From the NCBI GenBank assembly GCA_038087875.1, contig JAXLNO010002050.1:1-64000 (forward strand): a stretch of 64,000 nucleotides of DNA, given 5' to 3'. Below are positions 38,005 through 63,784 of the stretch, piece after piece. Made by a program: the position numbers and the translations under genes. Each line of letters opens with the position of its first letter. Position 1 is the first letter of the stretch. The stretch comes from Malacoraja senta. Taxonomy: Eukaryota. Under the pieces are notes generated by a model, which saw only the letters and a program-made list of their open reading frames with translations, searched no databases and was not told the DNA's origin.

Positions 38005-38112
38005 CTCTCCTCTTTTTTCTCCATAAAACAATTACTGCCAAGACAATAGCCAGCAATATCAGCACACACACGGCAATAAGGCCTATGTGCCTGTCTTTCT
38101 TCCTATTTCCTT
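38005..38112 (-). CDS. MHC class I-like gene, connecting peptide/transmembrane exon
   Basis: ttatttttcag|AA GGA AAT...AGA G|gtaaga; 108 nt, phase 1-1; EGNRKKDRHIGLIAVCVLILLAIVLAVIVLWRKKRR. Confidence 0.85.
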
Positions 38113-40801
38113 CTGAAAAATAAGAATGCATAATTTTACAAATCAATTGTTAAGCTGTGCAGCTAAATAGATGGGCACTGTCTGAAGACTTCAGGGTGAA
38201 GAAGGGTCTCGACCCGAAATGCCACCTATTCCTTTTCTCCAGAGATGTTACCTGACCGCTGAGTTACTCCAGCATTTTGTGTCTATATTTGGGGCTTTTC
38301 AAGGTATATAAGATGATATGGTGTTTTGAATCAAGGAGTTCTGCAGCATGGCAAAGGGACAATATATGTTCTGTACAACTCTATGATATATGGCACCATC
38401 ACAGCCACAACTTAATTCATGAAAGAAGGTGAATTGAAAGCAGAAAGCTTTAACCCTATATAAACTAACATTTGTTTTGGGGAAAATGCTGGATTCCTTT
38501 CAATAATGGCAGAACATTTAAGTAATAACAAAACAATAAAGTGCATTATCAGGGCATTATCAGGAAAATTGTAGAAAGAAAGAGATGCAGATACTGATTT
38601 ACACAAAAGCTTTAGTTTAGTTTATTGTCACATGTATTGAGGTACAGTGAAAAGCTTTTGTTTCATGCTAACCAGTCAGTGGAAAGAATATACATAATAG
38701 ACACAAAATGCTGGAGTAACTCAGCGGAACAGGCAGCATCTCTGGCGAACATGGATTCATCACCTATTCCTTTTCTCCAGAGATGCTGGCTGACCAGCTG
38801 AGTTATTCCAGCAATTTGTGTCCATCTTTGGTGTAAACCAGCATTTGCAGTTTCTTCTTACACATGGACAGGTGACGTTTCGTTTTGGGACCCTTCTTCA
38901 AACTTTGTTTGAGAAATTGATTAGAACTCTTTGAAAATGCAACAGGAACCCGTAGACAATGTATATTCGAGCAGCAGGTGTGAAAAGCCTAAAATTCATA
39001 AACAAAATGATGGAAAAGCAGAATAGGTAACAAAATTGGAATGAGAAACAAAAGAAATACAATATATTGTAGAGATCCAAACGTCGTGAACAAATCAATG
39101 TTTTTTTAAAGAAATACAGTTTTGGCCCACTCGCGTTTAGTAAGGACTTGAGCAAAGTTCCTGCCGTTGTTATCGGGCACACCAGTTGACTGGCGATTAA
39201 CTCATCACCAACTCCCACCAAAACCCTGTCACTCACGTGATAGTCCCAGCTCCCCTGACGAGGGTTCTAGCAATAAGTGGCCTGACCACCAGATGTCGCC
39301 ACAATATCTGGATTTTCATAAGATATCTGATCAAGTGATGCAAAGGCACATGGCTTATGACATTGGGGGTAATAATTAGCATGAATGGAAAAACAATTAA
39401 GAGCAAGCAGAGAGTTGTCTTAAAGGAGTGTTCTGGTTGGGAAACTGCAACTGCAGGTTGGGAATCAATGCAAGAAAGTGAACTACTTATCGTTGGTATT
39501 AAGAGCAGATGAAGGGACTGGTGGCGCTGTAGCCTAGATTGCTGATGATACATAGATAGGTTGGAAATTAAGTTCTGGGGTATGTCAACAGTCTTCAGAG
39601 TGAAACATCAGATTCCTTAGTTGTGCATTGTTCGAGGGAATCTTCAAAAGTGAGCATTTGTGTAGGTTAGTGCAGCATACTTGGAATCAAACTTCTACGA
39701 TCGCTGTTTGTCAGGCAGTTATATTTTTCGTTGCTGAATCTGTAACTTGCGTCATGGAACTTACTTCATTAGGTTTAGTTTTATTAACGCCAGATGTTTC
39801 AAAATATGAGCAAAGTTTGTTTTGTATGCTATCCAAACAAATTATAAAACTATACATAAATACAAACTCAAAAACAATAGATAGAGCAAAGAGGAGGATA
39901 CAGAGTACAGAATATAGTTCTCAGCATTGTAACACATCAGTTCCATGGACAATGTTCAATGTTCAATGAGGTTGAGGTGAATCGGGCATTAAACCTACAT
40001 TATGGAAGGACCCTTCCGAAGCCTGTTAACAGGTGGAAAGGGGGTGTTCCTGAGTCTGGCAGTGCATATTTTCAACTTTCTGTACCTAATGCCTGATGGG
40101 AGCAAGAAGGAGGAAGGTTGGGATAAGTCTCGTTTTCCAAGGCAACCTAGTGTAGATTGAGCCAATAGTGGGAAGTCTGGCCTGTGTGATGATCTTTAAC
40201 TCTTTGTATATTCTTGCAGTCTTGGGCAGTGCAGTTCCCAAATCAAGATGTGATGCAACCCAACAACATGCTTTCTCTAGCGGCATCTATAGATGTTTGC
40301 TAGAGTCACCAGAGACATGATGAATATTCTCAGTCTCCTGAGGAAGTAGAGGTGTCGGTGTGCCTCCTTGGCTATGTGGCCAGTCCATGACAGAATATTG
40401 GATATATTCATGCCAAGGAACATGAAGCTCTCAATCATTTCCACTTCGGACCATTGATTCAGATTGGGGCATGTACTCCCCCAGTGCCTTGTTGTTAATC
40501 ACATCATGAGGAACGATTCATTTTTTATTTAAACATACCTTTCATAGATTTCAGTTCCACCACTGAGAATCTCAAATACTCCTTCCTTATATATTAGTTA
40601 TTTATTTACTTTTGATAAATGTTCTGTTGACAAAGTCTTCTGCTCATGTGGAGAGTGGGTGCTGATTACGTGATTACTTAGAGCAACACCACTAAACAAA
40701 GAAAGTTTAAGCATCTTGGAATATGGGATGTATTCATGATGATTAAAATGGAAACAACAGAAGATAATGATTATCTATGAAAGAATATTTAACGTTCTTA
40801 C

Positions 40802-41068
40802 CCCAGATGATGGTCTTCCCACCGGGCAGGCTGCTGTGATCGACATGACAGGAATACTGTTTCCCATCATACGGATCATACTCAAGGACAGACCTTAGAT
40901 GATATGTTCCATCGTTGTTGGGTATGACCCCAGAAGATTTGGTCTCAGAGACATGTTGACCATTCTGCAACCAGCTGACATTGATGGCCGGTGGGTAAAA
41001 TCCAAACACAGTGCAGTACAGGACTGAATGATCATCAGGGCGGGCAGCGAGAGTGACCTCAGGGGAAA
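40802..41068 (-). CDS. MHC class I-like gene, alpha3 (Ig C1) exon
   Basis: tcttgtag|TT TCC CCT...TGG G|gtaaga; 267 nt, phase 1-1; SPEVTL...LYCTVFGFYPPAINVSWLQNG...VIPNNDGTYHLRSVLE...YSCHVDHSSL...IIW. Confidence 0.93.
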
Positions 41069-60924: not shown

Positions 60925-61385
60925 CAGCTGCTCTACATCGGTGAGACCAAGCGCAGGCTTGGCGATCGTTTCGCCAAACACCTCCGCTCGGTTCGCAACA
61001 ACCAACCTCATCTCCCTGTGGATCAGCACTTCAACTCCCCCCTCCCATTCCAAATCCGACCTTTCTACCCTCGGCCTCCTCCATGGCCAGAGTGAGGACC
61101 GCCGTAAATTGGAGGAGCAGCACCTCATATTTCGCTTGGGCAGTTTACACCCCAGCGGTATGAACATTGACCTCTAATTTCAGGTAGTCCCTACTTTCTC
61201 CTCCCCTTCTCAGCTCTCCCTCAGCCCACTGACTCCACCTCTTCCTTTCTTCTTCCTGCCCCCCCCATTCCCCCCACCCTCACATCAGTCTGAAGAAGGG
61301 TTTTCGGCCCTAAACGTTGCCTATTTCCTTCGCTCCAGAGATGCTGCCTCACCCGCTGAGTTTCTCCAGCATTTATATCTACCTA
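60925..61385 (+). mobile_element. Penelope-like element 3' fragment
   Basis: CQLLYIGETKRRLGDRFA in translation; reverse-complement homolog of 47560-48100; same tail module at 61290. Confidence 0.85.
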
Positions 61386-63523
61386 TGCATGTCCCTGTCC
61401 ATGTGTCTATTAAATATTGTTATTGTACCTGCCGCAACTCCATTCTCTGGCAGGTCATTCCATATGCTGACCACTCTCTGAGCACAAAGATTGTCCCAAG
61501 TTCCAATTAAATCTTTCCCCTCTCACATTCAACCCATGTCCTCTGGTTATTTTATTCTCCTTCTCTGGGTAAAAGGCTCTGGGCATACACTCTATCAATT
61601 CCCCTCATGATTTTAAGCACCCCTATATGATCACCCCTCAGCCTCCTGTGCTCCATGGAATAAAGCCCTGGCTTGCCCAATCTCTCCCTCTTGTTCACAC
61701 CCTTGAGCCCCGACAATATGCTCATAAATCTCATAAACATAACAATGTTGCAGATAATAAGCGCACCATAAATAATGCAAATATAAAAATTATTTTTGAA
61801 GGCAATATGATTCAATAAACATGGTTCAATGAATCAGATGATAATGTAATAAACGTCATTCACATGTATTCACATATAATTTGAAAATAATAATAAATAT
61901 TGCAAGATGTGGAAAATTGATAGAAATTATGCCCAGTGCATAATATTTTGATGTATTGTCCCCTGTTTGTACCCTCACCCTGTTTTAGTCCAGTTAAAGA
62001 TTAATAATATAATTTGTTTAATGTGTAACCGAAGAGGTAACAAAAAGCAATGTTTTCAGCAATAATTAATCATGAATGAATGATACTTTATTGTGACATG
62101 TGACAAGTCACAGTGAAAGTCTTTGTTTTGTAAACCCAACGTATGTCAAGATTCTTCACATAAAGGGCACCGACAAAGTTATAAAGTCTCCCACACCAGG
62201 TCCTCCTTTGTCCCCCCCCCACCCCCCACCTCACCATGGTTCCCCCACGCCTAGTCCTGCTTTGTTCAATGGTACACTACGAATGTCATTGAATTAACAC
62301 AGTAATGGTGATAGGACTTATTGATTTACAATACAAAACATGTCCAATTGCAAATTATATGGATATACAAGTGTGGTGCAGACGGATTTGGACAGCTTAC
62401 TTTACAATTGGTGCCCAAGATAATTTAGAGATATAGCACGAAAACAGCCCTTAGAGTCCACAGTGACCAGTGATCCCCTTTGGCATACAGGCTTGGAGTG
62501 TGGGGGGAAACCGGAGCATCCGGGGAAATCCCACGCAGGTCACGGGGAGTACGTACAAACTCTGTACAGACAGCACCTGAGGCCAGGATCAACCCTGGGT
62601 CTCTGGCACTACGGCAGCATCACTACGGCTGAACCACAATGACATTTAGGTTATCCTTTAAATATTTCACACAACTTTTCATTCAAAATTTGTCAATAAA
62701 AGTAAAAACAATTGGTGAGGCACGCAAGGGATTTTAACCATTCAAAAAGCCACCAACATTTCAATGATTTGTAAAATGCTGGAACACACAGCAAGTTCAA
62801 CAGAACCTATGGAAAGAGAAACAAAATTAATGCTTCAGAATTGTGAGAATGTGTAAGTTACAGACAGGAGTGGGAGGCATGGTTGGACATAGCGGGTATC
62901 ACTAATACGGTAATGACAGGTTTCCATGGTGATAAACTGACAATGAAGCCATCAGACAATGGCATTTTTGGTTTTTATTTCACATTTGCAGCATCTGCAG
63001 TTCTTAGGTTAGTGACTCAGCATGGAAACGGGCCATTCGGCCCACCAATTCCATGCCAACCATCGATCATCTTTCACACTAGTTCTATGTTATCCCAAAA
63101 TGGACACTAAATGCTGGAGTAAGTCAGGGGAGACACTCTGTGTGAGGAAGGGTCTTGACCTGAAAAGTCATCCATTCCTTGTATCCAAAGATGCTGCCTG
63201 TCCCGCTGAGTTACTCCAGCACATTGTGCCTATCTTTGCTGTAAACCAGCATCTTCAGTTCCTTCCTACACATCTATGTAATCCCACTTTCCTCACCCAT
63301 TCTCAGCACACAAGAGTAATTTACAGAGCCCAATTAACCTACAAACTCTCGTGTTTTCAAGATATGGGACGAAACCAGAGCAGCTGGAGGAAATATCTGT
63401 GGTCACAGGGAGAACGTGTAGTCAGGATCAAACCTGGGTCTCTGGCACAGCGAGAAATTTCTTTGAGATGTTTTTTTATGAACATTGATCTGACTCCAAA
63501 TGTATAGAAATGAATGAACTAAC

Positions 63524-63784
63524 TTGCTGTTTCGTTCTGCCTCCGCATCCATTCATCGACTTGCCCTTTGATGATTCCATGGAAACCAGTTTCAGAGACC
63601 GTATTTGTTACCCAGTAATTCCTGTCAAATGCAGCCGCCATCCATTTCTGTCTTGGAACTGTAATGACCATGTTTTTGTCATAATACTGTATCTCACAAC
63701 CATCCAGTTCACCCACGACACTATATTCTGGTAGATGAGTACCCCCGTGGTTCAGGGTGTAGTAATAGATCAGTGTGTGAGGCT
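63524..63784 (-). CDS. MHC class I-like gene, alpha1 exon
   Basis: ttgtgtctag|AG CCT CAC...GCA A|gttagt; 261 nt, phase 1-1; EPHTLIYYYT...LPEYSVVGELDG..IQYYD...PRQKWM...YW...RRQNET. The leader exon would lie beyond the right edge. Confidence 0.93.

Follow-up and report, generated by a model that had tools for sequence, protein, structure and literature searches.

The window, by which we mean the whole 64,000-nucleotide stretch of DNA that was analyzed, contains on its minus strand the intact exons of an MHC class I-like gene that has no alpha2 exon. Those for alpha1, alpha3 and the connecting peptide/transmembrane region (TM) had been described in an earlier note as three open exons with canonical splice sites, all in phase 1-1 and joining in frame through ...NETA-I-SPEVTL..., and both the coordinates and the AG/GT sites were found to be as described there. 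The alpha1 exon (63524-63784, minus strand, phase 1-1) supplies 86 full codons (PHTLIYYYT...RRQNETA), uses the same splice sites as its intact relatives, and is 94% identical in nucleotide sequence to the alpha1 exon of A. radiata. The alpha3 exon (40802-41068, minus strand, phase 1-1) encodes an Ig C1-set domain (Pfam C1-set PF07654, E 3.3e-20) that matches residues 182-268 of PDB chain 9ch4_A (E 8e-35). The connecting peptide, transmembrane segment and basic anchor are encoded at 38005-38112 (minus strand) by an exon with conserved splice sites that is 86% identical to the TM exon of the little skate.

A cytoplasmic tail exon, additional to the three exons noted earlier, was located at 16056-16096 (minus strand; (D)YQNIQPKQNVHC plus stop). 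It encodes DYQNIQPKQNVHC-stop and includes the tyrosine-based sorting motif YQNI, which is present as YQNI or YQTI in relatives. The flank of this exon aligns collinearly with the terminal exon of the R. longicauda and A. radiata genes, and an AATAAA at 15999-16004 on the minus strand belongs with it. The positions of the leader exon and promoter are beyond the window. Splicing of alpha1 to alpha3 keeps the reading frame, and because the remaining exons and splice sites are also intact, a mature membrane protein of 225 residues could, as judged from the sequence, be made from the window copy.

When alpha1 was searched against the PDB with phmmer, 9ch4_A ranked first (residues 3-86, E 1.3e-36), followed by class I chains from fish, birds and mouse; no class II chains were present among the matches listed (60 of 81). 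The Pfam MHC_I model does not fire on alpha1 alone. Among the features of a class I heavy chain, an Ig C1-set alpha3, a TM segment and a short tail are present and alpha2 is absent. The nearest solved structure is PDB 9CH4, and the nearest genes are A. radiata XP_032898133 and L. erinacea XP_055486429 and XP_055521885. We conclude that the window carries a single copy from a non-classical MHC class I family, one that is conserved among sharks, rays and skates. The family appears by sequence to be the CD1-like MHC-Ib lineage (UFA/UGA type) with a YQNI-type tail. The elasmobranch CD1-like non-classical class I lineage is called UFA/UGA (PMC10751288, PMC12562908), and lipid binding by the CD1-like lineage is taken from PMC12562908; W-type genes are mentioned in PMC10751288, and no primary paper on UFA/UGA structure was found in the literature. 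An origin of the window gene from W-category or class II genes was ruled out by its sequence affinity and its three-domain orthologs, and the window contains no partner chain gene or other MHC-like exon.

Searches for an alpha2 exon

The 22,455 bp between alpha1 and alpha3 (41069-63523) were reported in the earlier note to be rich in repeats and to show no detectable alpha2, and both statements held up. The interval contains many SINE-like and LINE-like repeats together with a 106-bp tandem array, and no alpha2 was detected there or elsewhere in the window by tblastn, an alpha2 HMM or blastn. Alpha2 sequences from three relatives produced a best tblastn E of 0.08 against the window, at a position outside the gene. 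An alpha2 HMM built from 20 sequences reached no better than E 0.83 in the six-frame translation of the window, compared with 2.5e-54 at a control locus, and no blastn match to four alpha2 exons had an E value below 0.06. A decayed alpha2 remnant was likewise rejected, as no match with E < 0.08 was obtained by the three methods.

Alpha2 is present in all close relatives, namely thorny skate, little skate, Rhinoraja longicauda and the solved shark structure 9CH4. The three-domain relatives comprise 9ch4_A (268 aa), the A. radiata and L. erinacea genes, and at least 10 R. longicauda proteins. Public relatives, three skate species included, contain no alpha2-less protein models, and public protein fragments yielded no candidates spanning the predicted alpha1-alpha3 join.

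The site of the missing exon

Over more than 45 kb, introns and downstream flank included, the window follows the A. radiata and L. erinacea loci in collinear order, with exons that are 92-97% identical. Alignment to loci L001 and L002, the latter from little skate, shows that homology ends at 47243 and restarts at 45778-45781. On the alpha1 side of this interruption, a preserved piece of intron 2 (47243-48370, minus strand; last homologous base 47243), located directly before alpha2 in relatives, is collinear with L001 51450-52962 and L002 52086-53989. On the other side, preserved intron 3 sequence (44208-45781, minus strand), which in relatives begins about 660 bp downstream of alpha2, is collinear with L002 55413-56942, with L001 60342-60400 and 64753-66228, and with 26249-26930 of a third locus, L003. 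The little skate counterpart of the scar spans 1,423 bp (L002 53990-55412) and has alpha2 at 54471-54749. The site of alpha2 and its flanks is occupied in the window by about 1.46 kb of filler (45782-47242) with no similarity to the relatives' 1,423 bp. Both end portions of the filler are LINE-derived, and a middle portion of about 850 bp is GC-rich: 47218-47043 and 46197-45777 are 79-82% identical to a LINE copy at 23045-23630, and the LINE has APE endonuclease and RT domains. Window ORFs that cross the two edges of the scar had no exact match on record.

These alignments show that about 1.4 kb was lost, consisting of the alpha2 exon with some 480 bp upstream and 660 bp downstream, and that its place was taken by the filler of approximately 1.46 kb, which is unrelated to it and in part derived from a LINE. 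The event looks like a retroelement-associated deletion or a break into which filler was inserted during repair. From the sequence comparison, the alpha2 loss is a mapped and apparently recent deletion that affects one copy, while the other known members of the family are three-domain. The proposal in the earlier note of a genomically hard-wired two-domain chain with class II-like architecture thus stands with respect to the genomic absence of alpha2, but its class II-like part falls with the mapped deletion and an alpha1 that matches class I only; the architecture in the window did not evolve as a class II-like one.

The fused intron contains an assembly gap of 498 N (52222-52719), from which the preserved alpha2 flank is 3.9 kb downstream. 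Two nested transposons with matching target site duplications had been described around this gap, a pattern that was not reproduced; both gap edges are CA/CCCA-rich simple sequence, and the tandem array adjoins. A repeat near the gap (51759-51897) has two copies in L001 and hence is not a unique anchor. The gap, whose length is uncertain, lies between alpha1 and alpha3, and the family appears to be multi-copy, with short contigs from the same organism and high word depth; together with a perfect 88-nt inverted duplication (60457-60544 / 61561-61648), these features would be compatible with an assembly artefact, in which alpha2 resides in the gap or alpha1 and alpha3 of different copies were joined. 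However, the scar and both alpha2 flanks adjoining it are uninterrupted sequence, all of it located between the gap and alpha3. An alpha2 exon hidden in the gap is ruled out by the position of these flanks, and the gene to which alpha3 belongs is without alpha2 whatever the gap hides. Nor is misassembly at the gap responsible, since the scar is about 5 kb away in continuous sequence. The alpha3-TM stretch of the window is confirmed by DNA contigs that match it exactly, obtained in two runs of the same organism. We therefore regard an artefact as highly improbable.

A second way of losing alpha2 would be a large deletion that fused alpha1 and intron 2 of one paralog to intron 3, alpha3 and the following exons of a neighbor. 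Divergence from the A. radiata gene is indeed uneven, at 0.13-0.14 in two places, immediately downstream of alpha1 and in the flank upstream of alpha2, and only 0.055-0.09 from the downstream alpha2 flank onward. Other blocks in the 5' half (63785-64000 and 61500-62077) are nevertheless at 0.08, as close as the 3' half, and the breakpoints are just 1.4 kb apart around alpha2 in relatives, such that a simple local deletion suffices without coincidence. A hybrid gene is accordingly considered very unlikely.

Substitutions and transcript evidence

The window copy has nine changes of its own in 663 coding nucleotides, none creating a stop codon or frameshift, which suggests from sequence that the deletion is recent. 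Six of these changes are nonsynonymous and three synonymous, a ratio similar to that of intact genes, although nine changes give no power to recognize relaxed constraint. No amino acid changes unique to the window copy are found in alpha3; its own variants in alpha1 are Gly14 and Glu25. Within the window the exons are free of stops, frameshifts and broken splice sites, and no lesion beyond the loss of alpha2 was found. In one RNA-type run, whose organism possibly differs from that of the window, the fraction of window words recovered was 0.68 for alpha3 and 0.07 for alpha1, and contigs from this run, with the same reservation about the organism, contained the alpha3 and TM exons only. No transcript evidence for the window copy was found in the available runs, the sole RNA-type run possibly being from another organism.

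Discussion

The locus is probably best explained as a young, alpha2-deleted null or pseudogene copy of a multi-copy CD1-like MHC-Ib family, a member of what would be an amplified, rearrangement-prone array. The disabling lesion expected of a pseudogene is present as the loss of a whole domain exon, and a null copy is the most likely outcome because, without alpha2, there can be no alpha1/alpha2 binding platform, the defining feature of the family. A pseudogene that lost alpha2 was among the mundane alternatives already listed in the earlier note, and the mapped deletion in a three-domain family makes it the best fit.

The four intact exons, their conserved splice sites and the in-frame join, along with the small number of window-specific substitutions and the lack of disabling ones, could also be read as a working, genome-encoded two-domain chain (alpha1-alpha3-TM-YQNI tail), perhaps pairing with itself like HLA-G2 and perhaps representing a spread subfamily. 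The join is an automatic consequence of every class I exon being in phase 1-1, however, and the scar is a messy replacement by filler, not a clean design. Neither the three skate species nor public protein sets provide an alpha2-less relative, and transcript evidence is likewise lacking, with the one RNA-type run possibly from another organism. A functional two-domain chain is thus unlikely, and it is quite improbable that the alpha2-less form was copied several times after the deletion and now yields an expressed two-domain chain that bears an endosomal sorting tail and pairs with itself or with another chain.

Taken alone, the null copy in the window would be an ordinary event, one more damaged member of an MHC class I-like array that duplicates rapidly. 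Its relevance is to annotation, where gene predictors would join alpha1 directly to alpha3 and call a 'two-domain' protein that is false. If alpha2-less copies were a maintained and expressed subfamily, they would bear on the interconversion of two- and three-domain MHC chains, and an expressed two-domain form, if true, would be a natural genome-encoded counterpart of HLA-G2 and a living move from class I toward a class II-like form. The interest of the family itself lies in the origin of lipid presentation, with its CD1-like character, YQNI-type tail, many copies and, in some skates, hugely expanded introns.

The window gene resembles members of the CD1-like lineage in its alpha1, alpha3, TM and tail exons (91-97% nucleotide identity), its collinear locus, its YQNI tyrosine sorting tail and its very large, transposon-filled introns. 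It differs from them in having filler in place of alpha2 and approximately 1.1 kb of flanking sequence, and since alpha2 is absent, the lipid-binding alpha1/alpha2 groove cannot form from the window chain alone. The product, if made, would share with class II and W-category chains a single membrane-distal domain followed by an Ig C1 domain and TM segment; unlike those chains, it has an alpha1 that matches class I only, three-domain orthologs and an apparent origin in a recent deletion.

The human HLA-G2 and -G6 isoforms have an alpha1-alpha3 structure produced by skipping of the alpha2 exon, and HLA-G2 has been reported to pair with itself. The predicted window product would have the same domain order, and phase 1-1 exons make this possible in both cases. 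HLA-G2 arises by alternative splicing from a gene that is itself intact, whereas the window gene has physically lost the exon and has no known transcript. Duplicated MHC arrays also contain pseudogenes and gene fragments, as exemplified by the human HLA class I fragments. Like these, the window copy is partly deleted and belongs to a multi-copy, transposon-rich, rearranging array; unlike them, its remaining exons are still fully open, which argues that it is young.

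Structure of the class I-like gene

The gene occupies the minus strand, with an alpha1 exon at 63784-63524, an alpha3 exon at 41068-40802, a connecting-peptide/TM exon at 38112-38005 and a last, cytoplasmic tail exon at 16096-16056. Exon mapping agreed with the earlier note on the first three, each of which has an AG acceptor and a GT donor in phase 1. The tail exon, an addition to that note's list, has an AG acceptor in phase 1 and encodes (D)YQNIQPKQNVHC followed by a stop codon, with an AATAAA 52 nt downstream of the stop. All splice-site sequences are identical to those of the intact relatives with which they were compared. 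The in-frame join between alpha1 and alpha3 is inherent to class I genes and is not evidence of design. No further alpha1, alpha3 or TM exon was found in the window. The leader exon is absent from the window, which holds 216 bp upstream of alpha1; in the thorny skate (Amblyraja radiata) gene the leader lies 31.8 kb upstream of alpha1. The split first codon of alpha1 (63783-63784) reads xAG, as against xGG in four of four relatives (Gly in their proteins), and the mature chain would accordingly start with a different residue, which a G as the last base of the leader would make Glu.

Replacement of alpha2 by a deletion scar

The search for chondrichthyan alpha2 sequences proposed in the earlier note was run over the whole window and found none, in agreement with the alpha2-less gene described there. 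Using alpha2 of three relatives, tblastn on both strands gave a best E of 0.08, at 9.3 kb and outside the gene, and blastn with four alpha2 exons gave no match below E 0.06. A profile HMM built from 20 elasmobranch alpha2 domains reached at best E 0.83 in the six-frame translation of the window; the thorny skate locus, as a positive control, yielded its alpha2 at E 2.5e-54. No alpha2-less protein was present among public relatives or their cluster members, and a 60-residue peptide spanning the predicted alpha1-alpha3 join had no match in the search.

Exons were mapped in four comparison loci, from thorny skate (L001), little skate (Leucoraja erinacea, L002) and two Rhinoraja longicauda paralogs (L003 and L004). 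The window is collinear with these skate loci from alpha1 to past the tail exon. The intron 2 stretch directly before alpha2 (L001 51450-52962; L002 52086-53989) corresponds to window 48370-47243, and the intron 3 stretch starting ∼660 bp past alpha2 (from L002 55413, L001 60342 and L003 26252) begins at window 45778-45781 and continues downstream. The interval between the two stretches measures 1,423 bp in little skate and includes alpha2 (54471-54749), whereas in the window it consists of ∼1.46 kb with no alignment to the little skate interval. The end portions of this filler (47218-47043 and 46197-45777) match a LINE copy in the window (23045-23630) at 79-82%, its middle 850 bp are GC-rich, and its first 11 nt repeat, in inverted orientation, flank sequence located ∼60 nt upstream of the breakpoint. 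These features mark the alpha2 site as the filler-bearing scar of a deletion rather than an ancient two-domain arrangement.

The filler's nearest relative is a minus-strand LINE at 22547-26496, within the 22-kb TM-to-tail intron, whose three long ORFs (432, 493 and 308 aa) encode APE endonuclease and reverse transcriptase domains. On the plus strand, 19157-19894 holds another fragment with an endonuclease domain, followed by more ORFs up to 21594.

Block mismatch distances between the window and the thorny skate gene range from 0.055 to 0.14, the highest being in the intron just past alpha1 and in the upstream alpha2 flank. Such uneven divergence might point to gene conversion or to a hybrid origin from two paralogs. 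Against this, further 5' blocks are no more distant from thorny skate than the 3' half is, and in relatives just 1.4 kb, around alpha2, separates the two breakpoints, so that a local deletion is the more economical explanation.

Assembly support

The preserved alpha2 flank starts 3.9 kb downstream of the assembly gap (52222-52719, 498 N). The scar and its two flanks form uninterrupted sequence, and so the gene to which the window's alpha3 belongs lacks alpha2 irrespective of the gap's content. Nested transposons with matching TSDs, which the earlier note had placed around the gap, were not reproduced; both edges are CA/CCCA-rich simple sequence, adjoined by a 106-bp tandem array. This array (53036-54010) has 7-8 copies of ∼106-bp units that are 91% alike, and a related element is present at 14831-15004. 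Near the gap, 51759-51897 is a repeat with two copies in L001.

Sequencing runs X1 and X2 contain exact contigs that span intronic as well as exonic parts of the alpha3-TM stretch; these runs are therefore DNA from the window's own organism, and they confirm the assembly over this stretch. Over 37900-41200 the exact contigs are short (∼100-210 bp), and in one run they are 8-20x deeper than variant contigs, which hints at many near-identical copies, although depth is not copy number. Elsewhere, 60457-60544 and 61561-61648 are the arms of an 88-nt inverted duplication, 100% identical and 1,016 nt apart. One arm lies where the block collinear with A. radiata intron 2 ends, collinearity stopping at 61492. 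This duplication may have arisen by local fold-back rearrangement or may be an assembly artefact.

Selection and expression

The 663 coding nt of the window contain no stops or frameshifts. Alpha1 plus alpha3, compared pairwise with four intact genes, give dN/dS values of 0.29-0.48, the same range as between intact genes, and nine nucleotide changes are window-specific (six non-synonymous, three synonymous). Their small number would fit either a young lesion or still-constrained exons. Spliced contigs in X20, an RNA-type run whose organism may differ from that of the window, cover alpha3 and TM exons only, and we therefore conclude that the gene family is transcribed. The fraction of the window's words present in X20 is 0.68 for alpha3 but only 0.07 for alpha1.

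The window gene is best explained as a young, alpha2-deleted and most likely null member of a multi-copy family of CD1-like class Ib genes. A working two-domain class I chain appears unlikely: the exons and searches bear out the alpha2-less gene of the earlier note, but its two-domain reading is unsupported given the filled scar and the automatic in-frame join.

Relationship to known class I lineages

Alpha1 and alpha3 match residues 3-86 (E 1.3e-36) and 182-268 (E 8e-35) of the 268-residue shark class I-like chain 9ch4_A (PDB), in which alpha2 occupies residues 87-181. Among the best 60 of 81 alpha1 matches, all the others are class I chains too, with no class II chain present. An exhaustive HMMER search with alpha1 returned skate and shark "class I histocompatibility antigen, F10 alpha chain-like" proteins of Leucoraja erinacea, Amblyraja radiata and Pristiophorus japonicus, each of them with three domains. 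A second search returned at least 10 intact R. longicauda paralogs and orthologs in sawfish, rays and several sharks; a catshark ortholog matches 9ch4_A across all three domains (E 1e-127).

Intron sizes vary greatly among skates: alpha1 and alpha3 are separated by ∼7 kb in R. longicauda, 32 kb in A. radiata (gene span 78 kb) and 36 kb in L. erinacea. Annotated intact paralogs number at least 10 in R. longicauda and one in A. radiata. The L. erinacea model XP_055486429 (311 aa) reads through the alpha3 donor into the intron (L002 64758-64814), and its last 19 residues are the translation of window intron 40743-40801; it is either a truncated model or a possible soluble read-through form common to skates.

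UFA and UGA are CD1-like, MHC-linked class Ib lineages of sharks and rays, and their description includes a crystal structure and bound lipids (PMC10751288, PMC12562908). The tail exon (16056-16096) encodes YQNI, and relatives' tails carry YQNI or YQTI. The YQNI tail fits the description of these lineages, which would place the family in UFA or UGA.
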